A stretch of 64,000 bases of DNA from Oculina patagonica. Lineage: Eukaryota. This document shows positions 12,491 through 59,089 of the stretch, piece after piece (positions within the stretch are counted from its first letter, which is position 1; every line of letters starts with the position of its first letter). The position numbers and the translations under genes were made by a program. The notes under the pieces were generated by a model. It saw only the letters and a list, made by a program, of their open reading frames with translations, was not told where the DNA came from and ran no database searches. The DNA is taken from assembly GCF_052425735.1 (NCBI RefSeq), contig NC_135762.1, forward strand, positions 10,292,001 to 10,356,000, written 5' to 3'.

Positions 12491-15200
12491 TATTATATGG
12501 GGTCGTACGGTCTACAAACTGCCATATTTTGTTCTTCCTAGACCGCAAATTGCTTTAAAGACCGAAAATTTGCGAAATCGCCAGATAGATACTAATGTAC
12601 CGGCAAACCAACACTTAAACTTAAACCGCTACACGGCCAGACCCTCTGTAGAGGCAGAGTGTAGAGACCCCATGTGCCACTTGGCACGAAGTTGTCAGCT
12701 GGAGGTGAAGTTATACCACGTGCTAGTAGTGGTAGTAATACTCCGATTTGTATTCACCAAATCTTGTCAGTTCTTTACATGCCTGGCCTGCGTGTATAGT
12801 AAACTTTCCCATCACTACAAAGGTATTCATCATAATCTTACAAGGTGTGATACACGAAATATTAGTTATTTAACTCAAGAGGCATCAACGAATTTATCTA
12901 AAGAAGAGGTTTCTTCTGGCCGATTCAACTCAGGACATTTATGTGAGATGAAAGAATTTTGGCGAGCAGAATCGAGCAGCGACATCATCTTTGCGCACGG
13001 TTCGAAACACGGTTGAGGTGTTATTGCGCTTTTTTGGACCTTCCTTAAGTGAAGAAGTGATAAAAATGGCATGTCTTGTTTTGTTGTGAGAATCCAAGGG
13101 ATTAAAACCATTAACTTACTTTTCTTGTTAAAATGGCCGATTTCATTCGTAGAAGCTAACCGATAAATTCCCACTAGGTGAAAACTTAAACCGCTAACTA
13201 TCATAATCCACGTCGGAGCAGAGACGTTCAGTTAATAAAATGGTATCAAACCTGTCAGGGACCTTTGTAACAACTTTGATTTAGTTGAATTGCTGGCGTG
13301 AGTAAAAGACATCCATAAAACACGTTATTTACCTTGGAGCCAAAGCTTAGAGAAGTTTAACGTTTAAAGTTAACTTGATGATCGGCTTATTTCAAAACTG
13401 CTATTAGTCGGGTTACGAAAACTGACATCTTCGCTCACTGTGTTTAAATTTCCGATCACTACCAAGTGGCCATCATCAAAATCCTGTGGGCAAACAGGAA
13501 AAAGTGGACCAGGCTATCGGAAGTTTAATTATAAATGATCTGTTCCAAAATGCATGAGCTTTGTTATAAAAAAAAATGCAGCAGAGGAGCGCAAGGACGT
13601 TGTTGGCAAGAGTATCTTTTTGGAAATGTTTAAATGGAGATGCGGACCGGATATTGGCAATTCTTTTTAGTAAGAAGGAAAACAATGCAGATAAGAATAT
13701 GAAACAAAACGGAATTTCTCAGTTTATCAATCCCTTGGCAATGTTTTCTAAGGGACGACAAGTGTGATGGTTTGTGTTTGTGAGATATTGTTTTTTTCCA
13801 TACATATACATGTACCCTCGTCCGCACATCTGTTCTAGAATAAAACAATAGAGCCACACCATTAGCAACGTCTCATCTGCATGGGTTTGACTGGAAGTGC
13901 TCCTCTTGTCACACTTTTGCCCCCATAGAATCGACATTTCTTGAGCCCTAACTCCTTCCATTTTGTGCTCCTTGGATCTACGTTAGTGGAGGCCCAACTA
14001 CCTCCTATAGAAGGCTTTGTAAACTTGACACCTAAGGATTACATATGGCTGTCATATTTCTGTGGGGTACTTTGTCACTCACATCCCACTTTTCAGCCAC
14101 ACTAAGTTGCTGTTGCTTTGCTGCAGGTATGTAATATCGATATTGATATCGATATCGATAAGCATCTTATTTCCTCTAACATTGGCGAACTGGTAACTAT
14201 CATTTATTACAACATATAACCTCCTATTATTACTTCTCCCAACCTACCCATAAGAAATATCTGGTGAACAGCTTGGGGAATTAATTTGGCACAAACTTCC
14301 GGAGCTTGTCCCGGTTTCGATAGTATTAAGCGGCTAGAAATATTTCTACTTCACCCTGGATTGTATGCTTACTGAACTTGTTGTTTGGCATAAAATAATT
14401 CCTGAACTGAGCAAGTTTCGCTGGACAAACTTAGAATCACTTTGCCGCCTTGATCATCTTGCGAATTTCCGCAATTCATCTTCGTCTAGCTGAGACTGGG
14501 ACTGAAAATTGGCTTCACTGTTAGATTTTCAGTCATTGTGTCGTTTTAAAGCTCAAGAATAGTTTGTTGTTGCAGATGGAAGAGTCTCGGCTCATATTAA
14601 ACGGAGCTTAAAGTGCTCCCAGCCAGCAAGAAAACGGCGCAAACAGTTAAATGGCTTTAATTTCTGATTGGCTGGCTTCGTTATTTTCTTGGTTCTGATT
14701 GGTCCACGGCAGCGGCCTAAATATTTTTTAGTCCGATAAATTCTCCATTTGAGCCCACAAAATACGCCACAATGAACGATGAAGTTATTGTAATACCTTT
14801 TCTTCTTTCAAAAAGCTTGTCCCTTGGCAGTCCGACTAGAGATTTTTTTATTATTTTAATTCGTTTGGTTTGCTTTAAACTGAAGGTGAAGTTTTGAAAT
14901 TTAGCAGTGTTGTTTATGATTTTGAACCAACTAATGAAGGCGTGAAAGCAAATGAAAGTTTATCAGTGCGATAAAAGCATTATTATTCCAGTGCATGGCG
15001 CCATAGAGCCAGTTTAGCGCTGCGTTGAAACAATGCGAATAATTAAAAATAAAATCGACAAATACAAAATGTTTTCATGGCGACAGTCGTCAGCAGCTGA
15101 TCAAATTTTCATAATCGTATCTGAAAGAAAACCTTTAATTCTATATCTTTAACTAAATATAATTTAGATCACTGTCAGCATCGACACTTTATTTATCGTA

Positions 15201-16043: not shown

Positions 16044-17063
16044 TCAACGTGTATTTTGATGCCGGTTAAGCTCGATTACTTCGGTTTGTGGTGAAACTCG
16101 TCCACGTTTGCAACAAGACTTCCATGTTAAGCAATAAAACATCTCCTTCAGTGCCTTGTGAAAATTTGTACTGGAAACAAACAAAATTGCTGGGTTAATT
16201 GCTGTCCGTAGAGATGGAAATACGTAGAAAAACAAACCTGCAAATAGCAAGCATGAATCTTTGGCATAAAGTGATGGAAAAACCATTTTCAATAACAAAA
16301 ACACACACAGCGGCGTCCAGCAGAGGAAAAATACAATGACAATCGATATGAAGACTTTCATCACAATCATGTTCTGTTGACGATTTCTCATTCTCGTGCT
16401 TTCTTGCACTTCGTCCGCTGCCGGCCGTGATACTGTCAAACTTTTCATGATTCGAGAGTAAAGCACAATTATTGTCACTTGTGGCACAAAGTAAAATAAA
16501 ACGAATCCACTGAGCAAATATATAGAGAGTTCATTTTTACCCCATAAAAGCCTGCAGTATGTCTGTTGGCCCTCCTTTACTATATCAGAAAAGAGGATAT
16601 AGGGAGCACCAATCAACAGTGGAATGATCCAAGTGAGTATCAATAAAACTGTTCGGAGCCGCCTTGTCAGCATTTTAGCCTTGAAAGGATGCACAATGGC
16701 GATGAATCTCTCCACAACAATCCACACAAGGCTCAGAATTGAAGCAACCTGCGAAACAGCTCTGGAATACAGTCCAAATTTGCACACGACCGTAGCCACT
16801 GGATCGTCGATCAAATGTTTCCTTGAAAGCATCCCTTCAGTAGCGAACAGTGGCCAGTTGGTCGAAGCGGACAGTAGATCAGATACAGCCATGTTTACGA
16901 TGAAATAATTTGTGCTTGTTCTGAGAGTGCCGTTCATCAGAAAAGCTGCTGCGACTAAAATGTTGCCGATTAATGCCGAAATAACGACCAACGAAATAAC
17001 TGTTGTAAGCGCTGTGGAAACGGTTTGGGAACATGTCGAATGATCTAATGTTGAGTTGTTCAT
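16044..17063 (-). CDS. Intronless class A (rhodopsin-like) GPCR, neuropeptide-receptor-like, paralog 1 (about 339 aa from MNNST)
   Basis: Seven hydrophobic segments; TM1 GN, TM2 MAVSD, TM3 C..ERF, TM4 W, ECL2 Cys, TM6 CWTP, TM7 NPAIL. N-glycosylation sequon at the N-terminus. Confidence 0.9.
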   Translation of the reverse strand: MNNSTLDHSTCSQTVSTALTTVISLVVISALIGNILVAAAFLMNGTLRTSTNYFIVNMAVSDLLSASTNWPLFATEGMLSRKHLIDDPVATVVCKFGLYSRAVSQVASILSLVWIVVERFIAIVHPFKAKMLTRRLRTVLLILTWIIPLLIGAPYILFSDIVKEGQQTYCRLLWGKNELSIYLLSGFVLFYFVPQVTIIVLYSRIMKSLTVSRPAADEVQESTRMRNRQQNMIVMKVFISIVIVFFLCWTPLCVFLLLKMVFPSLYAKDSCLLFAGLFFYVFPSLRTAINPAILFVSSTNFHKALKEMFYCLTWKSCCKRGRVSPQTEVIELNRHQNTR

Positions 17064-17165
17064 AGTTGTCTTGCCAGAAGTATGATCTAATTTCACAGAT
17101 GTGATCAGCGTCTTATTTCAAATGATCGGACAGATCGCCTCGAAGATTTGCTTTCCATCTGTCCC

Positions 17166-22592: not shown

Positions 22593-23618
22593 TTAAAACC
22601 CATGTTTAAGCTCGATAACTTCTCTTTGGGGTGAAACTCGTCGACTTTCGCAACAAGACTTCCATGTAAAACAATTACACGTTTCCTTTAGCGCACTGTA
22701 AAAATTAGTACTGGACACAAACAGAATAACTGGGTTAATTGCTGCGGCTAAAGATGGAAAAACATAAAAAAACAAACCATTATATAACAAACATGCATCT
22801 TTGGCATACAGAGATGGGAAAACCATTTTAAATACTAAAAACACACACAGCGGCGTCCAGCAGAGGAAAAATACAATCACAATCGATATGAAGACTTTCA
22901 TCACAATCATGTTCTGTTGACGATTTCTTATCCTCGCGCTTTCCTGCACTTCATCCGCTGCCGGCCTTGATCTTGTCAAACTTTTCATGATTCTAGAGTA
23001 AAGTATAATTATTGTCACTAGTGGCACACAGTAAAGTAAAACGAATCCACTCGGATAGTATATGGAGAGTTCCATGCTACCCCATGAAAACCTGCAGTAT
23101 GTTTGTTGACCCTGTTTTACGATCTTTGAAAAGCGAATATAAGGAGAACCAATCAATAGTGGAATGATCCAAGTGAGTATCAATAAAACCGCTCGAAGCC
23201 GCCTTGTCAGCATTTTCATAGCCTTGAAGGGATGCACAATGGCGATGAATCTCTCCAGAACAATCCACACAAGGCTCAGAACTGAAACGGTATGTGAAAC
23301 AGCTCTGGAATACAGTCCCAGTTTGCACACAACAGTAGCTTCTGGATCGTTGATCAATGGTTTTCTGGAAAGTATCCCTTCAGTAGCGTAGAGTGGCCAG
23401 TTGGTGAAAGCGGACAGTAGATCAGATAGCGCCATGTTTACGATGAAATAATTTGTGCTTGTTCTAAGAGTGGTATTCATCAGAAAGATAACTGTGACTA
23501 GAACATTTCCGACAAATGCAGAAATACTAACAAAGGAAATAGATGTTGTGAGCGTTGCGGAAATGATTTGGGAACACGTTTGCTGATCCAAAAAAGCATT
23601 GAAACTTGTGTTGTTCAT
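22593..23618 (-). CDS. Intronless class A GPCR, paralog 2 (about 341 aa from MNNTS)
   Basis: Same 7TM motifs (ERF, CWTP, NPVIL). The upstream in-frame ATG at 23699 overlaps the CRE and is probably not the true start. Confidence 0.9.
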   Translation of the reverse strand: MNNTSFNAFLDQQTCSQIISATLTTSISFVSISAFVGNVLVTVIFLMNTTLRTSTNYFIVNMALSDLLSAFTNWPLYATEGILSRKPLINDPEATVVCKLGLYSRAVSHTVSVLSLVWIVLERFIAIVHPFKAMKMLTRRLRAVLLILTWIIPLLIGSPYIRFSKIVKQGQQTYCRFSWGSMELSIYYPSGFVLLYCVPLVTIIILYSRIMKSLTRSRPAADEVQESARIRNRQQNMIVMKVFISIVIVFFLCWTPLCVFLVFKMVFPSLYAKDACLLYNGLFFYVFPSLAAAINPVILFVSSTNFYSALKETCNCFTWKSCCESRRVSPQREVIELKHGF

Positions 23619-23924
23619 GTTTGCCAGGATTTTAATCTTAATCAGTTTCACAGAACAACCTGTAGTTAAGATTTGCTTTTCACCTGTCCATGACGTCATA
23701 GAGGATAAACACCGTTAACAAATATTTATTAAAAATTGCTGCTTGTCTTATCAATTTTTCTTATATCATGAAGACATCTCGTCGCGTCCTCTTCAAAGAA
23801 AAAGTAGAATTTAAAACAAGTTATGGCCTTTCCACCCGGGCAGACAAAGTATGAATTATCCGTGACAAAAACTAAAGGACAAATTCTGTGGCGACAAATT
23901 GTCAAACACCTTTGTTTCCCCACT

Positions 23925-37558: not shown

Positions 37559-38207
37559 TTTACCGTACCAAAATTCAGAATTTAGTGAAAAAATTGGGAC
37601 CTCCGACTCTGTTGTTTTAGTCTGAATGTCTCCGTACTCGTCGACAAACATAGCGTAATTCAGTGGCGTGCGCGCTTAAGTTTAATTTTTGGCGGGAAAG
37701 TTTTTACTTTTTTTACGACCGGTAAACACTAGCTTATCTTAAATTACGAGGTTCTGTTTTATTGGTAAAACCTCTATTTACAAAAAAAAAATATATATTT
37801 TGCAGCTGAGAAAACTGTGGTTATGCAGCGCGTTGAAGACTTCTCGAACAAATCTTGGCAACCTACATGATTATATTTGACAATTATTCTGCGAAATCAC
37901 GCGGCATATCGCCTGATACTAGATTTTCTTAGCATAGTATCTGTAATGAAAATATAATTGCCTGTTTTGTAAGGTTTTTAACTTTTAAATCCTTATAATG
38001 TTTTCTCCGTTACTCGATCGCACTGCGTTACTCTCTATTAGTAAATTCTCCCTTAAAGGAAATTATTCCGCCTGTTTACTTCTCTCACTGTGACGTGTAA
38101 CAATACTCCTGAATTGGGACTTGAATGCGGTTGTACCAAAAACTAAACACTAAAACATTATACTCTCTGCTTAACCTATTTTCAGATTGCTTTCTGCGTC
38201 CTTAAAT

Positions 38208-39329
38208 ATGAAGTTTCTTATCCTGATTCAGATGCTGCTTCATAACCTTCTTGTTACAGACGCCTGTACAGAATTCCGAGTAACTTCCGAAGATAGCTCG
38301 GTGATCGTCGGTCGTAGCCAGGAGTTTAACATCGACATCGAGTCTCATCTCGTCGTGGAGCCTAAGGGATATTCCCACACCGCCATTCCTAAGCCAGAAT
38401 GTATTTTGCATTCAGCATTGCAGTGGCAAAATAAATATAGTATCGCATACCTTGATGCTCTGGATTTGCCCATTGCTATTGACGGCTTAAATGAAGCTGG
38501 TCTTTCAGTTGGTTCACTCCTATTCCCTGGCTTTGCCCAATTTCAGGAAGTTCCGCGCAAAAAATGTGGCACGGCAGTGTCTTCTTTACAGTTCCCGTTA
38601 TGGATCCTGGGAAACTTCGGGACTGTACAGGAAATAAGAAGAACTCTGAGGACTGAGGATTCCTTTCCGCTGGTATGGGAGGCAACACTTCCAATCAACC
38701 AGAACCCCTTCGAACAACATTACTCGATCACTGACGCAACTGGCGATGGTATCATCATTGAGTTCACAAAACAGGGAAGAAAACAGTACAATAACACTCT
38801 TGGCGTTGTGACCAATTCCCCACCTTATGATTTCCACATGATGAACATTCGAAATTATATTCAACTTTCCAAATTCGCTCACGGTCCATTGGTTTTGGGT
38901 CAAATGAATTTCGACGCTGTTGGTCAGGGCAGTGGGCTTCTTGGGGTACCCGGCGACTTTACACCGCCATCGAGATTTGTACGCACTGCCGCCATGGCTC
39001 ATTTCGCTGATAAAGTCCACACAAACAAAGAAGCAGTTATGCTGGCTTTTCATATCTTGAACACCGTCGATATTCCCCGTGGAGTAGCCACTTCCCGTCA
39101 CCCGAAACCCTTTACAAAGAAATACCCAGTTGACTACACCTTATGGGCTGTCGTCAAGGACCTCAGCAAGAAGGCACTTTATTTCCGTGACTATAACGAT
39201 CTGACCATTCGTGTGCTTCGCATGGCCGATGTAAAGAAAGGACAAAGACTGATAATGAAAGTAGGGAAATCTATTGGTGGTTTTGTGGACATCACTGATG
39301 ACCTTATCCCGGTGAATGGACAGGATTAA
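38208..39329 (+). CDS. Secreted choloylglycine hydrolase / penicillin V acylase family Ntn-hydrolase (bacterial type), 373 aa
   Basis: 19-aa signal peptide ending TDA, then Cys1 (CTEF), GR17SQE20F, DGLNEAGL, GVVTNSPPYDFH, GLLGVPGDFTPPSRFVR, HILNTVDIPRG and DYTLW..VKD. Intronless CDS; splice-acceptor-like CTTAAC..TTTTCAG at 38170-38185 upstream of the ATG. Confidence 0.9.
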   Translation: MKFLILIQMLLHNLLVTDACTEFRVTSEDSSVIVGRSQEFNIDIESHLVVEPKGYSHTAIPKPECILHSALQWQNKYSIAYLDALDLPIAIDGLNEAGLSVGSLLFPGFAQFQEVPRKKCGTAVSSLQFPLWILGNFGTVQEIRRTLRTEDSFPLVWEATLPINQNPFEQHYSITDATGDGIIIEFTKQGRKQYNNTLGVVTNSPPYDFHMMNIRNYIQLSKFAHGPLVLGQMNFDAVGQGSGLLGVPGDFTPPSRFVRTAAMAHFADKVHTNKEAVMLAFHILNTVDIPRGVATSRHPKPFTKKYPVDYTLWAVVKDLSKKALYFRDYNDLTIRVLRMADVKKGQRLIMKVGKSIGGFVDITDDLIPVNGQD

Positions 39330-40572
39330 CACTATAAGAAAATCTTGTGTTGAAAGTGTGTTCCGATGACGCGAGGACATTTTTTATACCAAGTGTTAAC
39401 GTTGCATGTTTCAATCTCAATACAAAAGTTATGAAGTGCGTTTTTACTTAAGGCAGTTTACTGACATTCTATTTTTTCTTCCATTCAAATGCCCTTGATT
39501 CACAAAAAGAAACACTTATAAATCACTAAACGGCATGACTTAGTGACCCCAGTTAGAGTAAATGAATGAATAAATGAATGAATAAATACAATCATTTCAT
39601 TCTCATGTCGTTGATACATAAAATAAAATCGTATTTAGTTTTATGCAGGGCCGTAACTAGCAAAGCACTTGCCTCGTCTAGACTTACACCAAAAATTAAA
39701 AAAGAAAAATGTTAACGTTTAGTTGGAGAAATTATTCACAGTTGAAGGAAATTAACTTCTCAGAAGAAATACCTTACAATAATGCTGAAAATAGGGTTTG
39801 TGCATCTATAATTCAAAATTTTCTGTAAGGCTTGTCTACCGGGGCATGCTCCAAGAGACCTCGTCGCGGCTAAATTCGGAAAACATAGTCGTGGCAGACT
39901 TTCGCCGAAGTGTATTTTTTCCTTTTTTTTTCCATTTTTGGGTGTTTTGAGCTGAGTAGAGTGAACTGAAGTGTGAAAAGTTCAAATGATGATTTTTGTT
40001 TGGCAAATCTTTGTAAAAGTTTTCGGATTTTTATTCTAATTTCATAATATATTTTCAGAGTTCAGTGATTCATAGCCAATTTGATTTTGTCTCCATTTAG
40101 CTTTGACACCGATCGACAAAAAAGTGACAGTGGCTACTTACCGAAAAGCTGTTATAAAGCTTATGTTCCTGCCGTACTTGGAATTAATTTACTTGCACAC
40201 TCATAATTTCCATATCGAACAATCAGGAAATACTTGAAAGGCGAAACAGAAAAAAGAAATAAATGAAAACAATTCTTTAAATCTTGTCCTTTTAAATAAC
40301 TCTTTAATTACAATTTTGTTATTTCATATTTTTAATCGTTTTATGTAGCAATCAAGTGAAGAATTTATGGTGAACACGAATTTATGAGGCGGCAGCAACA
40401 AAGCGTATTTCATAACACTGTTTGATCTCGTACAAACACATCACGTTCGTTGAACTTATATTACGTCATAGACAGGTAAAAAGCAAATCGTCAATGTCTT
40501 TTCCCTGATTATTTCAAATAAGACGTTCACCGCATCTCAATGAAATTAAGTCATACATCTGACTAGCAAAAC

Positions 40573-41532
40573 ATGAACAACGCCAGTTCCCATGATTTTA
40601 TGGGTCACTCGACGTGTTCCCAAGTCGTTTTAACAACACTAGCAGCAGCTATTTCCTTTGTAAGCATTTTTGCTTTTGCCGGCAACATTTTAGTCACAGT
40701 GACCTTTCTGATGAACGCAACTCTCAGAACAAGCACAAACTACTTCATCGTTAACATGGCAGTATCTGATCTACTGTCCGCTTTGACCAACTGGCCACTG
40801 TACGCTACTGAAGGGATGCTTTCAAAGAAACATCTGATCGATGATCCAGTGGCTACGATTGTGTGCAAAATGGGACTGTATTCCAGAGTTGTTTCACAGG
40901 CTGTGTCAGTTCTGAGCCTAGTGTGGATTGTTGTGGAGAGATTCATCGCCATTGTGCATCCCTTTAAGGCATTAATGCTGACAAGGCGGCTCCGAACAGT
41001 TTTACTAGTACTTACTTGGATCATTCCACTATTGATTGGTTTCCCATACATTCCCTTCTCGATAATCGTTAAACAGGGTCAACAGACATACTGCAGGTTT
41101 TTATGGGGTAAAAAGGAACTTGCCATATATTTTTCCGCTGGATTTGTACTATGCTACTGTGTGCCGCTTATTTCAATAATTACACTTTACTCTAGAATCG
41201 TGAAATGTTTGACACGATCAAGGCCGGCAGCGGACAAAATGCACGAAAACACAAGAATAAGAAAAAGTCAACAGAACATGATTGTGATGAAAGTCTTCAT
41301 ATCGATTGGGATTGTATTTTTCCTTTGCTGGACTCCGCTGTGTGTGTTTTTGTTATTGAAAACAGTTTTTCCATCACTGTATGCCAAAGATTCATGCTTG
41401 CTAGTTGCAAGTTTGTTTTTCTATGTCTTTCCTTCTTTACCCATGGCAATTAACCCAGTAATTATTTTTGTGTCTAGTTCAAATTTTTACAAGGCACTAA
41501 AGGAAATGTTAACAGGTAATTGCCGTAACTGA
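40573..41532 (+). CDS. Intronless class A GPCR, paralog 4 (inverted, 319 aa, shortened C-tail)
   Basis: Same 7TM motifs (ERF, CWTP, NPVII). The stop TGA aligns to the Trp codon of TWKSCC in the paralogs. Confidence 0.88.
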   Translation: MNNASSHDFMGHSTCSQVVLTTLAAAISFVSIFAFAGNILVTVTFLMNATLRTSTNYFIVNMAVSDLLSALTNWPLYATEGMLSKKHLIDDPVATIVCKMGLYSRVVSQAVSVLSLVWIVVERFIAIVHPFKALMLTRRLRTVLLVLTWIIPLLIGFPYIPFSIIVKQGQQTYCRFLWGKKELAIYFSAGFVLCYCVPLISIITLYSRIVKCLTRSRPAADKMHENTRIRKSQQNMIVMKVFISIGIVFFLCWTPLCVFLLLKTVFPSLYAKDSCLLVASLFFYVFPSLPMAINPVIIFVSSSNFYKALKEMLTGNCRN

Positions 41533-43781
41533 AAGTTTTGTTGGAAATGCGGACGAATTTTACATCAGAATGAATCTTACGAGCCTAGCCAAAAAGGAAC
41601 GCATATTAAGGACAGCAACTAACTGAAAATGGAGAATCTTGAATCGTCGTTTTTTTGCTGTACAGGAATTACTGAGCTACGATTTTTAAATGAGCGAGAA
41701 CACATGTGGCCATATTTGGATTTCACAAAGCTATTGTCCCTTATCACATATTAAATTTCGACTTTTATTTTCTATGTGATTTCTTTTTAAGTGATGTCGT
41801 TCACGATTTTATCAACTCAATAAATGTAGATGTGGATTTTGTACGTAAAGAAACCTTTTTACTAATACCCGGTATCAATATGACAACTGGCGATCTTAAC
41901 TGGTCCCTCTTAATTATTCGAGAACATGGCTTGGATTGAATATTTTGTAGTCGGCGAATGGCTCAAACTGGATTCAATTTAGGAGATCGAAAGATTAACC
42001 AAGTATATGGTACAAATACCAAATACAGTGTCACCACCTATACTATCGTCCGCGACAGTACTGTTTCTCCACTTTTTTTTCAAAGCGAACAGTCCATTGT
42101 CTTGTCATAAATATTTTGTTGGCCGAAATAAAGCTGTTTATGTAATGTAAAAATCGATATCCTTTTCATTAACATATTCTTTTACGGTTTCACACTTTTG
42201 CTGAATATCGCCAATATTATGGTCTCCATTTTGTAACCACATCTAAAAATGTAATAAAAGAAGATGACAATGCTCATAGTGGTTCTTAGCTTTTCCTTTA
42301 CTATTAGGCAGATTTTAATGTAATTTGAACAGCTGTGTGGTCCCCACATTATGCCATCCAATTATTTCGACCTTGCGCCGACAGAAATAGCTTACAGGGA
42401 TAGAAATGATCTCAGTTGAAATGTTAGCGTAATTTTTTCGTTTTTTTAAATTGTGTCTCAACTAAACCAAAAAAGTAATTTAGTTTCCTTAGTACCAGGA
42501 TTAAATTAAAAATGTGGTAAATGTGGTAAAGCAAGTAGTATCTTTTTCAATAATTAGGGACTTTAAGATACAGGAACGCGGACTTCTTGAAGGACGCGAC
42601 GGTGGAAGAGAGCCTGGGTCGAGTACGCGGCGTCCGTGGCGGAAAAATTAAGTTAAGTGTTGCAAGCGACGCGATGATTTTTGTCGAGCTTGTGCAGAGT
42701 CATGGCTTCTTTAAGAGAAACTCGTGAACTGTTGCTTATTAGTCATGCAAGGGGCTTTATAACCGATTTAGAGTTCTTGCTGCTTTATGAGGAAAACAAG
42801 TCAGATAATTTGGATTTTCCTTACGAGGAGTATCCGAGATTTTGCTTGCAGGAAGCGAATGAAGCCGAGTGTAAAGCCAACTTTAGGGTAGAGAAGCATC
42901 ATATTACCCGACTGCAAGATGCACTACGAATTCCTGCAGTGTTTAAATGTAATCAAGGGACAGTTTGTGATGGAACCGAAGGCCTTTGTATCCTTCTGAA
43001 GCGATTTGCTTTCCCTTGTCGTTACTCTGACATGATTCCGATTTTTGGAAGGCCAGTACCCGAACTATGCATGATAAACAATACTGTAATGGATTGGCTA
43101 TATGACAACCACGGACATCGAATCATGCATTGGAATCAAAACATCTTAAGTGCCCTCCAGCTCGAAAACTACGCTGAAGTTATTTCTAACAAGGGAGCAC
43201 CACTAGATAATTGCTTTGGTTTTGTGGACGGAACTGTTCGCCCGATATCAAGACCAGGAGAACACCAACGACTGGTGTACAATGGGCACAAGCGTGTGCA
43301 TGGATTAAAGTTTCAGTCAGTCGTGGTACCAAATGGCTTAATTGCACATCTCTATGGGCCAGTAGGTAAGCCACGTTTAGCTCGATTTAAAGGTGGTTGG
43401 GGCAATTCATGATACATGGTTAACTATGCTGACTATGAAGTCTTGGGACTTTCCAGATTTTTTTTTAAAAATCATGATCTGAAGGCAAATTCAAGAGCTA
43501 CCTCCCTATTTTTAGTCTGCTTTGCTTTGTTAATAATAACAAAGTGCTAAGATGTGAGGAATACAATTCAGAATTTGTGACCATTCTCATGGTGGTATAC
43601 ATTCTATTTTTCCTTCAACAGAAGGACGAAAACATGATGCTGCAATGTTAGCAGAGTCACACCTGTATGACAGCCTCCAAATACATGCTTTTTCAACCAC
43701 TGGACAGGCTATGTGCATTTACGGTGATCCAGCCTACCCCCTAAGAGTGCATCTGCAAGCACCTTTCAGGCATCGAGTATT

Positions 43782-46700
43782 TGTTAGGATGATCTCATTA
43801 ATATGTATAAGATCTGACGTCAATAAAGTCCCGGATGTTGTTGTTCCTCGAAGTGAAAACATGGCGTGGCGTGTTTGATCTATTGATCCGAAAATCCGAA
43901 CAATCCTCCCCCCGTCATGAACGAAACAGGTTATGGGCCCAGGTCAAGGTACGGGAGACTACTCTTCGATGGGGATGAACGGAAATATGAGCAATGGGAA
44001 GTCAAGTTTCTCGGATACATGCGATTGCAAAAGTTGAAGGATACGATCACTACGGCTGAATTTGAGGACGTTAATGCAGCCAAGAATGAAGAAGCTTTCG
44101 CGGAGTTAATACAATTTCTAGACGACAAAAGCCTTTCCCTTGTAATGAGAGATGCACAGGATGACGGGAGGAAAGCATTAAAGATTTTAAGAGCACACTA
44201 CGCTATTTCTGAAGAAAAAGGATTCAGTGCATTGACACCTTCGGGCAATGCCACGAAATTAATTAAAGAACTATCGTTTCCTTTAAGCAAGCAGGCAAGG
44301 CTTTTTCACAACTATTTTAATGCACGTTTTGTTTTGGATATTATATAGGCCTCTTTATTCGGCTCTCAACCCATGCCATTTTTTTTTTCGGGCAGTAAGG
44401 TCTCCGCCTCCCCAGGTCCGAAGGTGCCCGTACGCCTATGCAGGCAAGCCGAGAGTGATCTCGTTGTACACGGAACTGACCTCGCTTGTGAAGTCAGCAC
44501 ACGAGACAGTGACAGACTATGTCATACGAGCAGAGACCGCGGCAACAGCTCTTAAAAATGCCGGTGAAACCGTGACGGATAGCCTTCTCATAGCGATGGT
44601 ACTGAAAGGCCTACCAGAAGAATACAAGCCGTTTGTTGTCGTTATTACTCAGAGCGAGAAAGAACAAACATTTGGCGAATTTAAAGTGGCCTTACGAAGC
44701 TTCGAAGACACAGAGCGAGCGAGTATAGCGACGGGAAATCACTCAGTTATGAAAACTGAACACAAGCAAGAATCCCAGCCGAATATCACCTGTTTTCAAT
44801 GTAGCCAGCCAGGGCACATTGCTCGCTTCTGTGGTAATAAAGACAAAGGCAGGAACGGACGGGGGCACTGGTGCAACACGTGCCATAATTCATCACACAG
44901 TGACAGAACATGTCGACGCAAAAGAAAGAACAAGACCGACAAAGTCAGTCAGGCTTCTGAGACTTTGGAGGATTCTGATGAGGAAGTGGAGCATTCATTT
45001 GCATTTGAGACCAATGCCTATGTAAATGGGAACACTACTGGGAAGCCAAATGCCCTACTGGTGGATTGCGGTGCGACCACTCACATCATCAATGACGAGT
45101 CCAAATTCAGCAAATTTGATGACAAGATCACACCAGAAAAGCACTACATCGAGCTAGCAGTTGGGACACGATCTAACAACGTGGCACTCAAGAGAGGGGA
45201 TGTTGAGATAACCATCATGGATACCACTGGAAAGTATGTCAGTGCAACACTGAAGAATGCGTTATACATTCCTGCATACCCGCAGAACATATTTTCAGTG
45301 CAAGCTGCGACTGAAAGAGGTGCTTCAGTGACTTTCAATCCTGACTCTGCTGAATTAGTTTACAAGGATGGTACCAAGTTTAACATCGAGAAGCATTGTA
45401 GACTGTACTATCTTAGTACCTTCGACAAGAATGACACTGACTCTGTTAATTATACTTGTGACCTGAAGGGTTGGCATGAAATACTAGGACACTGTAATTA
45501 TGAGGACATCTTGAAACTAAAAGGTGTAGTGGAAGGTATGAAAATAAGTAATAGTAGTTCTAGTAAACCCCAAGATTGTAATGTTTGTATTGAAGGAAAG
45601 ATGACCCAAAGTAGGAATAGGAATCCTGATGCTCGTGCTACTGCACCATTAGAATTAGTTCATACAGATTTGGCTGGACCTATCGATCCAGCTTCTAGAG
45701 AGGGTTTCAGATATTCCATAGCTTTTACAGATGACTATTCAGGAGCAATTTTTGTATATTTTCTGAAACGTAAGAGTGACACTGTAGCTGCAACAAAGAA
45801 GTTTTTAGCAGACACAGCACCATACGGAGAGGTCAAATGTATTAGATCGGATAATGGTGGTGAATTTATTTCTCAGGAATTTAAATCTCTGCTGGAGAAA
45901 AATAAGATAAAGCATGAAATGTCTGCACGCCATTCTCCCCACCAAAATGGGACGGCAGAGCGACACTGGAGAACCTTGTTTGAGATGGGAAGGTGTTTAC
46001 TCCTGCAAGCCAATCTGGGCAAAGGGTTTTGGCCCTATGCGGTAATGGCAGCTGCGTACATTCGCAATCGGTGCTTTAACAACCGCCTTAAGCAAACTGC
46101 ATACTTTGCTATCACTGGCAAGAAGCCAAATTTGTCAAACATGAGAGTTTTTGGATCTGAATGCTATGCATATAAGCAGAATAAGAAGAAATTGGATCCC
46201 AGGTGCACCAAAGGGATTTTCCTTGGGTATGATAAAGAGAGTCCTGCCTATCTGGTGTTAATCCCAGAGACGGGCAAGATTATGAAGTACAGGGTGGTGA
46301 AGTTCCCTAGGAGAGGGGTACATGTTGAACGACAGACCCAAACTGAAATTCCACTGGGTGATGATGATTTCATGCCATCACGACACAATACTAACCCTGA
46401 TACTTGTAGTGAATCTGATGTTGACAGATCCGGAGAGGGTCTGGATGAACTTGCTGAAGGACCTAAGGCTGAGAATGAATCTAGTCCTACTTCACAGCCT
46501 CGTGATGAAAGTGTGAGACGCTCCACGAGGGAGAGAAGACCCCCAGCTTACCTGAGAGATTATGTCACAAACATGAAGGATAGTGATCAGGTACTGACGA
46601 GTGTAGATTACTGTTACAAATTTTCTGCTTTCCCTCAAACTTACCAAGAGGCTATGGAATCACCTGAGTCTAGTAACTGGGAGGCAGCAATGAAGGAAGA

Positions 46701-48451
46701 GATGAATTCTCTAACTGAGAATAACACATTTACTTTGTCTCCTTTGCCAGAGGGCAAAAATTCAGGGGGGGGCCGTTGGGTGTACACTATCAAAGAAAGT
46801 TCCAATGGTGCTAAAACTTACAAAGCAAGGTATGTTGCTAAGGGTTACAGTCAAGTGAGAGGTGTTTGCACCAACAGCTAATCTCACATCAGTGCGTGTG
46901 CTAATGCAAATGGCAGCACAACACGATTTGATTTTGCATCAGATGGATGTGAAGACGGCATATCTAAATGCCCCTATTGATTGTGAGATCTATATGGATC
47001 AAGCTGAGGGCTTTGAAGTTCCCCCGGGGAGTGAAGGGAAACTTGTGTATAAGTTGAACAAATCTCTGTATGGATTGAAGCAGTCGGGTAGGAATTGGAA
47101 CCATGTACTACACTGTTTCTTGCAAGAGAATGATTTTGTACAAAGCCCTGTTGACAATTGTGTGTACACCAAACAGGTTGGAAGTGGACTTGTTGCTATG
47201 CTTGTCTGGGTGGATGACATAATTATAGCAGCAAGCGACATGGTGTTATTGTCTAAAACTAAAGAGATGTTGAACAAGAGGTTTCATATGAAAGATCTGG
47301 GTAGACTTTCATATTTCTTGGGTATTCACTTTGAGCAAGGTGATGGCTTTGTAAAAATGAACCAGAAGAGGTATATCAGTAAGGTGCTTGAGAGATTTGA
47401 GATGTCTGATTGTAAACCAAAACCTACACCTTCTGAGCAGAAGTTTGAGTTTGGCAGTGAAAACCCTGTTGATCCAAAGCGATACCGTGAAGCAGTGGGT
47501 AGCTTGGTATATGCTATGACATGCACCAGACCAGACATATGCTGGGTTGTTACTAAACTGTCTCAGTTTCTAACTAATCCCACAAAGGAACACTGGGTAG
47601 CAGTGAAACATGTACTGCGGTACTTAAAGGGGACCCTTGACTTTGAACTGTGCTATAGGAAATGTGACAATGGTCTTACACTGATAGGCTATAGTGATGC
47701 TGATTGGGCATCATCTACAGATGACAGACGCAGCATCAGTGGGTACTGCTTCAGTTTGAATAAAGCTGGTCCACTTATCTCTTGGAAGTCGAGAAAGCAG
47801 CCAACAGTAGCTCTTTCATCTTGTGAAGCTGAGTACATTGCCCTGGCAGCGGCAGTTCAGGAGGGCATGTATCTCATTCAGATAGTGAATGATGTTGGTG
47901 AGGTAAATGATCCTGTTTTGATCTTTGAGGATAATCAGGGGACAATTGCCTTGTCCATGAATCCAGTCAATCGACAGAGATCCAAACATATTGATGTGCG
48001 ATACCATTTTATTCGCAATGTGCAGAATGCAGGCAAAGTAATCATTAAGTATTGTCCCACCGCCGATATGGTTGCTGATGTCATGACCAAACCAGTTACG
48101 AAGATTAAGTTGCAAAAATTCAAGAGTTATATTTTTGGTTCTTAAGACATTTGAGTTTTAATATAGAAGTAATGTACAAGAGTTCTATATTTTGTTATAG
48201 TTTTACTCATTTGTCAACTGATAGTAAGCTGTATGTTTATATTTTAGCAATATGACCGTGTTCATGTGATTTTAGAACATACATAGGAAGAGATCAAGTG
48301 GGGGTGTTAGGATGATCTCATTAATATGTATAAGATCTGACGTCAATAAAGTCCCGGATGTTGTTGTTCCTCGAAGTGAAAACATGGCGTGGCGTGTTTG
48401 ATCTATTGATCCGAAAATCCGAACAATCCTCCCCCCGTCATGAACGAAACA
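43782..48451 (+). mobile_element. Ty1/Copia LTR retrotransposon
   Basis: Identical 147-bp TG..CA LTRs (43782-43928, 48305-48451), GTATT TSD, PBS GGTTATGGGCCCAG, PPT before the 3' LTR. Domain order gag(CCHC)-PR(DCGAT)-IN(HTD, IRSDNGGE, AER)-RT(MDVKTA, WVDD)-RH(DADW, EAE, EDN). Confidence 0.97.
43917..48145 (+). pseudogene. Copia gag-pol, disrupted by an insertion (about 44204-44440) and a frameshifting deletion (about 46862)
   Basis: Three ORFs (43917-, 44320-, 46862-) in different frames. Typical HYAG.GKPRVI and GIDY.ETFAP motifs are split at these points. Confidence 0.85.
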
Positions 48452-49363
48452 GTATTGACCCCACAAATGCAAGCTTATAACCATTCCATGAGTGCTGTAC
48501 GTAGCTCTGTTGAGTGGCTTTTTAGAGATATAATTAATTATTTCAAATTTTTGGATTTTAAAAAAAACTTGAAAATTGGCCTTAGTCAAGTGGGCAAAAT
48601 GTATATAGTGTGTTCAATTCTGCACAATGCACTGACATGCCTTTATGGAAATACCACATCTCAGTTCTTTGATTTAGATCCTCCTTCACTGGAGGATTAT
48701 TTTGCTTGATTGTTGTACTGAACAGTCCAAGTTAAACTAAAGCTGAAAAGACATCCTGTGAGTGTCTAAATAACAAGTCAAAAAAGTGTCTCATATATTG
48801 TAATAAAACTTTAATTTACACAAAGCACTTGTATCCTTATGAGCTTTTTACACTGCAAACATGCAAAAAGTGTGCTCAACTTGTTTCCACTTATGAGAAA
48901 AGTTGTTTCAGCAACATGTATTTGGAATGAGTGTTAACTACTGTATAACATTATCAGAGCTAATAAATATTTTAAAATGAAAACAAACCTTTCACTTTAG
49001 GGGGAGTCTGGTTAAATAATACTTTAAATTTTAAATAACTGTTTTTTTGTCTCTTCAAAGTTTTTCAGGCACAAAACTGTCTATTTGATTTGTGCTCTAT
49101 GACCCCATAGATCTTACAAAATAGCGATAACAGAGAACTAGGGTTCTCTTGAGTTGTTTGTTCATTTTCACAAATATCCTCTTTATGCAATTAAAGTAAA
49201 AGTTTTTTCTTAAGGGGGGGGGGGGAGTAACTTTTATGGTTCCAAGATCAAGTTTTTCTTGAAAAATTGTGAATAATTTAATGAATAGATAAACAACAAG
49301 ACAATCTGCTCTCAAGGTTAGCAGGGTTGAGTTGGTATGTGTTTGTCATTTTCCCTCACTTAA

Positions 49364-58606: not shown

Positions 58607-59089
58607 GTATGGCCCGGAGAGTCAGCAGCCTGGATAACTGTAAAATTTTTTGAGTATGGCCTGGAGAGCCAACAGCCTGGAGAGCTGTAAAATGATTTTT
58701 GAGTATGGCCCGGAGAGCCATGTCAGATGTTTTTTGAGTATGGCCTGGAGAGCCAGCAGCCTGGAGAGCTGTAAAATGTTTTCTGAGTATGGCCCGGAGA
58801 GCCAACAGCTTAAGAAGCTGTGGAAAGTTTTTTGAGTATGACTGGAGAGCCAACAGCCTGGAGAGCTATGAATTTTTTTTTTTTTTTTTTTTGAGTATGG
58901 CCCGGAGAGCCAACAGCCTGGAGAGCTATGAATTTTTTTTTTTTTTTTTTTGAGTATGGCCCGGAGAGCCAACAGCCTGGAGAGCTATGAAATGTTTTTT
59001 GAGTATGGTCCGGACAGCCAGCAGCCTGGAGAGCTGTGAAATAGATTTTAAGAAAGCTATGTTTGTATGGCCTGAAGGGTCAACAGCCT
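58607..59089. repeat. Minisatellite, about 10 units of GTATGGCCCGGAGAGCCAACAGCCTGGAGAGCT separated by T-rich linkers
   Basis: Direct read; lies inside the DIRS-like element upstream of the RT remnant. Confidence 0.9.

Follow-up and report, generated by a model that had tools for sequence, protein, structure and literature searches.

We analysed a 64,000-nt stretch of the genome of Oculina patagonica (contig NC_135762.1, positions 10,292,001 to 10,356,000 of the forward strand; hereafter the window, numbered from its first letter) and identified in it a single-exon gene for a predicted secreted amidase of the choloylglycine hydrolase family (CBAH; Pfam PF02275). Sequence comparisons place this gene in the cnidarian NtNH family, and we are highly confident of the identity of the enzyme and of its bacterial origin. 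An earlier sequence-only reading of the same DNA had proposed a bacterial-type amidase that the host acquired by horizontal transfer and uses for quorum quenching. That idea had already been published for a coral enzyme (Mason et al. 2024, Curr Biol 34:3226), and the window gene is an additional member of the family.

The open reading frame (ORF) runs uninterrupted on the + strand from the ATG at 38208 to the TAA at 39327-39329 and encodes 373 aa, and the nearest in-frame stop codon 5' of the ATG is at 38172. The encoded protein matches Pfam PF02275 with an E value of 9e-54 and 183.7 bits, against a cut-off of 20.4, and residues 20-340 align with profile positions 1-304 of 316, covering the whole domain. 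CBAH, beginning at residue 20, is the only Pfam match of the protein. The gene product is already present in the NCBI protein sets, and a tblastn search revealed no second CBAH copy or fragment elsewhere in the window. The AlphaFold2 model of the protein has a mean predicted local distance difference test score (pLDDT) of 93.4 and a predicted template modelling score (pTM) of 0.89, and it superposes on the solved structures of penicillin V acylase (PVA) and bile salt hydrolase (BSH) with template modelling (TM) scores of 0.86-0.92 by target length and 0.76-0.80 by query length. As modelled, the amidase has the alpha-beta-beta-alpha fold of the N-terminal nucleophile (Ntn) hydrolases. The first strand of the core begins at residue 21; residues 2-15 are modelled with low confidence as a helix that is not part of the fold.

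The leader, MKFLILIQMLLHNLLVTDA, has a hydrophobic core, ends in T-D-A with T at -3 and A at -1, and runs straight into Cys20. A leader stopping directly before the Cys is found in all of the cnidarian relatives aligned and in nearly all of the bacterial relatives. From these features, cleavage after Ala19 and secretion of the protein are predicted. In an alignment of 75 homologues, no substitution occurs at C20, N95 (in the DGLNE motif), N203 (TNSP) or R256 (PSRF), and at least 90% of the sequences conserve each of R36 and E39. The intact intronless 373-aa ORF, the signal peptide ending in T-D-A before the Cys and all of the family motifs named in the sequence-only reading are therefore borne out.

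The best characterised relatives, by sequence as well as by fold, are the PVA of Lysinibacillus sphaericus (3PVA/2PVA; P12256), YxeI of Bacillus subtilis (P54948) and the BSH of Clostridium perfringens (2BJF; P54965); the sequence matches in the Protein Data Bank reach E 1e-45 for the PVA 3pva and E 1e-38 for the BSH 2bjf. These Gram-positive enzymes share with the window protein the catalytic set of Cys1, Arg, Asn, Asn and Arg, but they are 24-28% identical to it in structure-based alignments and have Asp where the window protein has Glu. The Glu, at mature position 20, is common to the whole clade of the window protein, including its bacterial members. The three Gram-positive enzymes are cytoplasmic and have no signal peptide, and their Cys is exposed by removal of Met or of a short propeptide.

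Pectobacterium atrosepticum, a Gram-negative bacterium, has a periplasmic PVA (4WL2; Q6D291) that degrades N-acyl-homoserine lactones (AHLs) and in which, as predicted for the window protein, signal-peptide cleavage exposes the nucleophile Cys. However, the two proteins match with a phmmer E value of 1e-9 in the N-terminal half only (residues 33-211), at 20% identity, and the TM score is 0.72. Gram-negative periplasmic PVA is ruled out as the source lineage by this distance. The previously proposed match to such enzymes thus stands for the architecture of a signal peptide followed by Cys and fails for the sequence, whose nearest characterised relatives are the Gram-positive PVA and BSH.

The PF02275 family also takes in animal acid ceramidase (ASAH1) and NAAA, to which the Cys-Ntn mechanism is common; both are alpha-beta precursors that undergo internal autocleavage. 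The window protein, in contrast, has no alpha-subunit domain and has 19 residues only before its Cys, and neither ASAH1 nor NAAA appears in the top 30 Swiss-Prot structural matches to its model. Kinship with ASAH1 or NAAA is ruled out by the missing alpha-subunit domain and by their absence from the top structural matches. The distinction that had been drawn between the window protein and these autocleaving enzymes holds, as no internal autocleavage segment is present either.

A search over 5.8 billion proteins returned 2041 matches at E <=1e-10. Among the best 120 of them, the named matches are stony corals and Hydractinia, followed by bacteria. The stony coral proteins (Acropora, Montipora, Oculina, Stylophora, Pocillopora and Desmophyllum) are 50-78% identical to the window protein, that of the hydrozoan Hydractinia is ~42% identical, and the bacterial proteins are up to 43% identical. 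In a scan of the genomes of 185,579 prokaryotic species, we found at least 600 related loci; identity reaches 34-43% in the top-ranking ones, which belong to many phyla. Nearly all of the 80 bacterial ORFs that were extracted encode a signal peptide with Ala directly before Cys. These uncharacterised secreted bacterial CBAHs, with examples in Lentimicrobiaceae/Bacteroidota (MBT4189964.1), Thermodesulfobacteriota, Pseudomonadota, Chlamydiota and Planctomycetota, resemble the window protein over their full length at 34-43% identity, in the Ala/Cys leader junction, in the Glu at mature position 20 and in their size of ~360-375 aa. They lie in prokaryotic gene contexts; the window gene, by contrast, is flanked by eukaryotic sequence, resembles host genes in composition and carries a putative splice acceptor in its 5' untranslated region (UTR).

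A tree of 93 rows was inferred with IQ-TREE under LG+C20+F+G4 with posterior mean site frequencies (PMSF). All cnidarian sequences, from stony corals and Hydractinia, together with nine transcript-length sequences without a taxon label, form one clade with a support of 100/99. The cnidarian clade nests among the secreted bacterial CBAHs, which are its nearest non-cnidarian relatives and share its signal-peptide-then-Cys architecture; the closest of them are two sequences of Lentimicrobiaceae and a group to which the protein P0103 belongs. The branches bearing on the donor lineage have a support of 86/68, and the donor lineage is not placed. Because the cnidarian clade nests among secreted bacterial enzymes with the same Ala/Cys junction, the tree supports an old transfer of a secreted CBAH from a bacterium to a cnidarian, followed by duplication, in agreement with the horizontal transfer suggested earlier. 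It also supports the view that the leader-then-Cys design was inherited from the bacterial ancestor and not invented in cnidarians. P0103, which is 40% identical to the window protein, is encoded in a dense prokaryote-type gene context (L085, GCA_052915985.1 contig JBLFLA010051806.1, 8001-9119). Its neighbours are ankyrin-repeat, Macro, HEPN/nucleotidyltransferase, DUF2608 and sulfotransferase genes. The contig resembles that of an intracellular bacterium within a larger assembly, a possible hint on the ecology of donor-like lineages.

The cnidarian family reportedly comprises multiple Acropora paralogues, and it is said to be wide in Scleractinia and to occur also in some other cnidarians; its closest relatives are reportedly bacterial, implying lateral transfer. 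Papers citing Mason et al. 2024 describe AmNtNH1 of Acropora millepora (XP_029207486.1) as a quorum-quenching enzyme of the PVA/Ntn-hydrolase type: it inactivates AHLs, immune challenge induces it, and it is expressed at about the time when larvae settle. The P0074 cluster holds the A. millepora proteins XP_029207487.2 and XP_029207489.2 (P0191), whose accession numbers are adjacent to that of AmNtNH1. The window protein and P0191 fall in one scleractinian clade with a support of 93/95. Like the window protein, AmNtNH1 belongs to the CBAH family, has a leader directly before the Cys, carries the catalytic residues and has bacterial nearest relatives; it differs in its paralogue subclade. P0191 is in a 100%-supported Acropora/Montipora subclade. 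The subclade of the window protein is a different one, also supported at 100%, and comprises Stylophora and Desmophyllum sequences together with the A. millepora paralogue XP_029192333.2; in the tree the window protein groups with the robust-clade corals. Among the A. millepora paralogues, XP_029192333.2 is the closest to the window protein (65% identity).

The amidase gene is resident host DNA. It is surrounded by four intronless genes of rhodopsin-type G-protein-coupled receptors (GPCRs) at 16044-17096 (-), 22593-23699 (-), 26990-28087 (-) and 40573-41532 (+), which match Pfam 7tm_1 with E 1e-38 to 1e-43 and are 81-82% identical to one another in DNA. In GC content, GC content at third codon positions (GC3) and CpG content, the amidase gene differs little from the GPCR genes around it. 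A Copia-type long terminal repeat (LTR) retrotransposon lies at 43782-48452, and its terminal repeats of 148 nt (43782-43929 and 48305-48452) are 100% identical, which suggests a recent insertion. These GPCR genes, the Copia element and the reverse-transcriptase ORFs confirm the setting of animal genes and transposons that had been noticed in the sequence.

The linkage of the gene to its flanks recurs in independent data. In a second NCBI assembly, a contig of 5.6 kb matches 37269-40209 at 98.8% identity. Reads were compared from four runs, X1 (labelled 'RNA?'), X2 and X4 (DNA-like) and X10 (polyA); runs X2 and X4 show flat DNA-like depth, and their contigs bridge the amidase and its unique 5' and 3' flanks with 1-2% divergence. 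Logan contigs of a related species, ~88% identical, are collinear with the window from ~230 nt upstream to ~540 nt downstream of the gene. A 288-kb contig of another coral carries a 75%-identical, single-exon orthologue between GPCR genes that share 67-72% identity with the GPCR genes of the window, and the GPCR gene at 40573-41532 is 72% identical to the GPCR gene adjoining the CBAH gene in the related coral contig L083. The same junctions are thus present in the second assembly, in the DNA runs and in related species. L083 keeps the GPCR-amidase-GPCR order and also holds a truncated second amidase copy (13933-14595). An Acropora-type contig (L084) carries two tandem amidase paralogues ~10 kb apart (10001-11137, and from 20869 onward); the first is a single exon, and the second extends past the end of the locus.

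We also estimated the ratio of nonsynonymous to synonymous substitution rates (dN/dS) by the Nei-Gojobori method. The values are 0.14-0.16 against two close relatives (dS 0.22-0.24), 0.19 against the 75%-identical orthologue and 0.15 against the Acropora-type paralogue. Identity is 93% in the coding sequence where it is 80-83% in the flanks. With dN/dS at 0.14-0.19 and a coding sequence much better conserved than its flanks, the gene is under purifying selection. The comparison across related species, which the sequence-only reading had named as a check, also found the ORF intact in every species and assembly compared.

Upstream of the ATG lies an acceptor-like tract, ...cctattttcag, with its last base at 38185. 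A pyrimidine tract followed by AG is present ~20-30 nt 5' of the ATG in all seven of the homologous loci compared, which include the Acropora-type paralogue and two more distant corals; in the distant loci L083, L084 and L089, the upstream sequence is otherwise not conserved. In addition, several RefSeq relatives have two accession numbers per identical protein, a pattern expected of transcript variants that differ in their UTRs. Because the acceptor position is kept in seven loci and the RefSeq accessions are doubled, a conserved 5'-UTR intron is favoured as a candidate. The Logan contigs L001, L002 and L089-L092 contain no splice evidence; they are collinear with the genome 5' of the ATG and retain the acceptor motif. 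The spliced 5' UTR ending at 38185 that had been predicted is thus upheld in the conserved position of its acceptor motif and has no RNA confirmation in the runs examined.

Taken as a whole, we consider it fairly probable that the window gene encodes a host-encoded NtNH amidase of bacterial derivation that is activated by signal-peptide cleavage and quenches AHL-based quorum sensing. The protein would enter the secretory pathway, where signal peptidase would cut after Ala19, and this single cut would both release the protein and create the free alpha-amino group of Cys1. Cys1, together with Arg17, Glu20, Asn76, Asn184 and Arg237 (mature numbering), would then attack an N-acyl compound at its linear C-N amide bond and hydrolyse it. 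Judging from AmNtNH1, the most likely substrates would be bacterial AHLs, resulting in quorum quenching, and the proposed sites of action are the mucus, the larval or polyp surface and the gastric cavity.

Several points weigh against this explanation. Whether AHLs are the physiological substrate of this paralogue is, in our judgement, evenly balanced, as the assignment is drawn by homology. Because the window protein lies in a separate 100%-supported subclade and is ~52% identical to P0191, the sequences indicate that the window gene is a paralogue, not an orthologue, of AmNtNH1. P0191 in turn is taken as the product of the AmNtNH1 gene from adjacent RefSeq accessions, not from sequence. The substrate range of the CBAH family moves easily among bile salts, penicillin V and AHLs. 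The window protein scores 188.5 bits against the NCBIfam equivalog for bile salt hydrolase (NF038245; cut-off 350) and 159.5 bits against that for YxeI-type penicillin V amidase (NF058572; cut-off 600), below the cut-off in both cases. As for expression, the polyA run X10 has no reads on the amidase gene, and the RNA-labelled run X1 yields a single 371-nt contig at a depth of 3.4, while the same run also yields intergenic contigs. The quorum-quenching role raised in the sequence-only reading is accordingly reported for the paralogue AmNtNH1 and is suggested by homology for the window gene.

An enzyme of the same class and origin could instead act on another substrate, such as N-acyl amino acids or taurines, lipid amides of prey, symbionts or host, or beta-lactam-like microbial products; in a variant, the window paralogue would be an acyl-transferase. 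In either case, AHL cleavage would be absent or incidental. The subclade is separate from that of AmNtNH1 and is kept in robust (Stylophora, Desmophyllum) and complex (Acropora) corals, and such long retention of distinct paralogues suggests a division of labour. Substrates vary within the family, as the structural database matches include both PVA and BSH and several Swiss-Prot names read 'bile salt hydrolase/transferase', and the scores under both equivalog cut-offs fit this alternative as well. Acyl-transferase activity has recently been shown for bacterial bile salt hydrolases. Nevertheless, the only experimentally characterised cnidarian member, AmNtNH1, reportedly inactivates AHLs, and no evidence for another substrate turned up in the present analysis; we therefore regard this alternative as possible but rather unlikely. 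A more specific form of it is that the paralogue group, which lies beside a chemoreceptor-like GPCR cluster in at least two corals, evolved a non-AHL substrate or reaction. The enzyme may, for example, make or destroy an N-acyl amide signal sensed by the animal itself, by hydrolase or acyl-transferase chemistry. This is a speculative and improbable idea, but if true it would tie a bacterial-derived enzyme to host chemosensation, beyond quorum quenching.

The remaining alternatives concern the origin and state of the gene. Vertical descent of an ancient eukaryotic CBAH lost in most lineages might be entertained, as PF02275 spans animal acid ceramidase and NAAA and some AlphaFold cluster matches, 17-21% identical, bear the name 'Choloylglycine hydrolase/NAAA C-terminal domain-containing protein'. 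It is very improbable, however, as the cnidarian clade lies inside the secreted bacterial CBAHs with 34-43% identity and a common Ala/Cys junction, the named proteins among the best 120 matches are cnidarian or bacterial, and the NAAA-type alpha-subunit and internal autocleavage segment are lacking. The animal proteins in the top Swiss-Prot structural matches are secernins, with TM scores of ~0.5 and 11-13% identity. An intronless coding sequence for a bacterial-type protein could also be a sign of bacterial contamination or misassembly, but we give this a negligible probability, given the animal GPCR genes and eukaryotic retrotransposons on both sides, the junctions that recur in the second assembly, the other DNA runs and a related species, the synteny in the 288-kb coral contig, the host-like composition and the splice-acceptor-like motif kept in position. 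Nor is the gene likely to be a decaying or silent relic without current function. The four runs compared gave no convincing RNA signal, but the ORF is intact wherever it was compared, dN/dS is low and all catalytic residues are kept; moreover, the sampled runs may miss the relevant stage or tissue, as AmNtNH1 is reported to be specific to larval settlement and to immune induction. We consider a relic highly improbable.

Under the explanation that we favour, a host-encoded quorum quencher of bacterial derivation, the case illustrates the takeover of a bacterial weapon by an animal. Because signal-peptide cleavage alone would activate it, a secreted bacterial amidase of this kind could be used in the eukaryotic secretory pathway without new maturation machinery. 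Corals are probably aided by such enzymes in managing the microbiome of their surface, a matter of relevance to coral disease and larval settlement. AHL inactivation has been public since 2024, as reportedly have the several coral paralogues and the bacterial origin; the present analysis adds a further paralogue group, the single-exon coding sequence, the acceptor motif of conserved position, the GPCR synteny and the purifying selection.

The 3' flank of the amidase had been described as duplicated at about 62-64 kb. The repeat match is real, but it is a dispersed 181-nt repeat and hence a weak argument against contamination. A repeat search of the window found no repeats of at least 80 nt joining the 3' flank and the 62-64 kb region. 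Segmental duplication of the flank is ruled out, as the match spans 181 nt at 82% identity and there is no second CBAH copy. The distal repeat copy (63826-64000) is cut by the window end, and related contigs reveal that an inverted-repeat element of ~1.85 kb (61977-63831) is inserted inside it. The arms of this element, of 716 nt and 92 nt, are 92% complementary, and in appearance it is a foldback transposon or one resembling a miniature inverted-repeat transposable element (MITE). The positions of the amidase features and of the adjoining elements are collected in the table.

Table. Features of the amidase gene and its surroundings in the window
Feature	Position	Strand	Basis
Coding sequence of the CBAH-family secreted Cys-Ntn hydrolase, single exon, 373 aa plus stop	38208..39329	+	ORF reading, Pfam PF02275, AlphaFold2 model, TM score to PVA/BSH
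Predicted signal peptide, residues 1-19, MKFLILIQMLLHNLLVTDA	38208..38264	+	hydrophobic core, T at -3, A at -1
Cys20 codon, predicted N-terminal nucleophile once the leader is removed	38265..38267	+	invariant in 75 homologues; aligns with Cys1 of L. sphaericus PVA 3pva
Arg36 to Glu39 (mature Arg17, Glu20), putative catalytic-site residues	38313..38324	+	each at least 90% conserved
Asn95, DGLNE motif, putative oxyanion-hole region	38490..38492	+	invariant
Asn203, TNSP motif	38814..38816	+	invariant
Arg256, PGDxTPPSRF motif	38973..38975	+	invariant
Polypyrimidine tract and AG, candidate 3' splice site of a 5'-UTR intron	38170..38185	+	22 nt 5' of the ATG
Two AATAAA polyadenylation-signal motifs, ~240-255 nt past the stop	39569..39586	+	motif scan
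Short dispersed repeat, 3' flank of the amidase	39447..39626	+	blastn 82% over 181 nt against 63826-64000
Neighbouring intronless rhodopsin-type GPCR gene, synteny marker outside the enzyme	40573..41532	+	Pfam 7tm_1 E 1e-38

Other elements of the window were also recorded. Contig L093 of the second assembly joins 35993 to 37269, and the ~1.27 kb between these positions is present in the window and absent from that contig; this segment has a very high depth in the DNA runs and is probably a polymorphic repeat insertion. The Copia element contains a gag-integrase ORF (44320-46881) and a reverse-transcriptase ORF (46862-48145) in different frames. A further reverse-transcriptase ORF (RVT_1) at 2309-3691 is preceded by an unassigned ORF at 1488-2351, and an ORF at 42681-43412 is a weak match to the Harbinger-type DDE_Tnp_4 family (E 9e-5, slightly below the Pfam cut-off). 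A run of N at 32723-33005 is an assembly gap or a masked stretch. Direct repeats at 58646-59052, tandem or overlapping, consist of 5 copies of a 107-nt unit with a spacing of ~49 nt and 61-82% identity.

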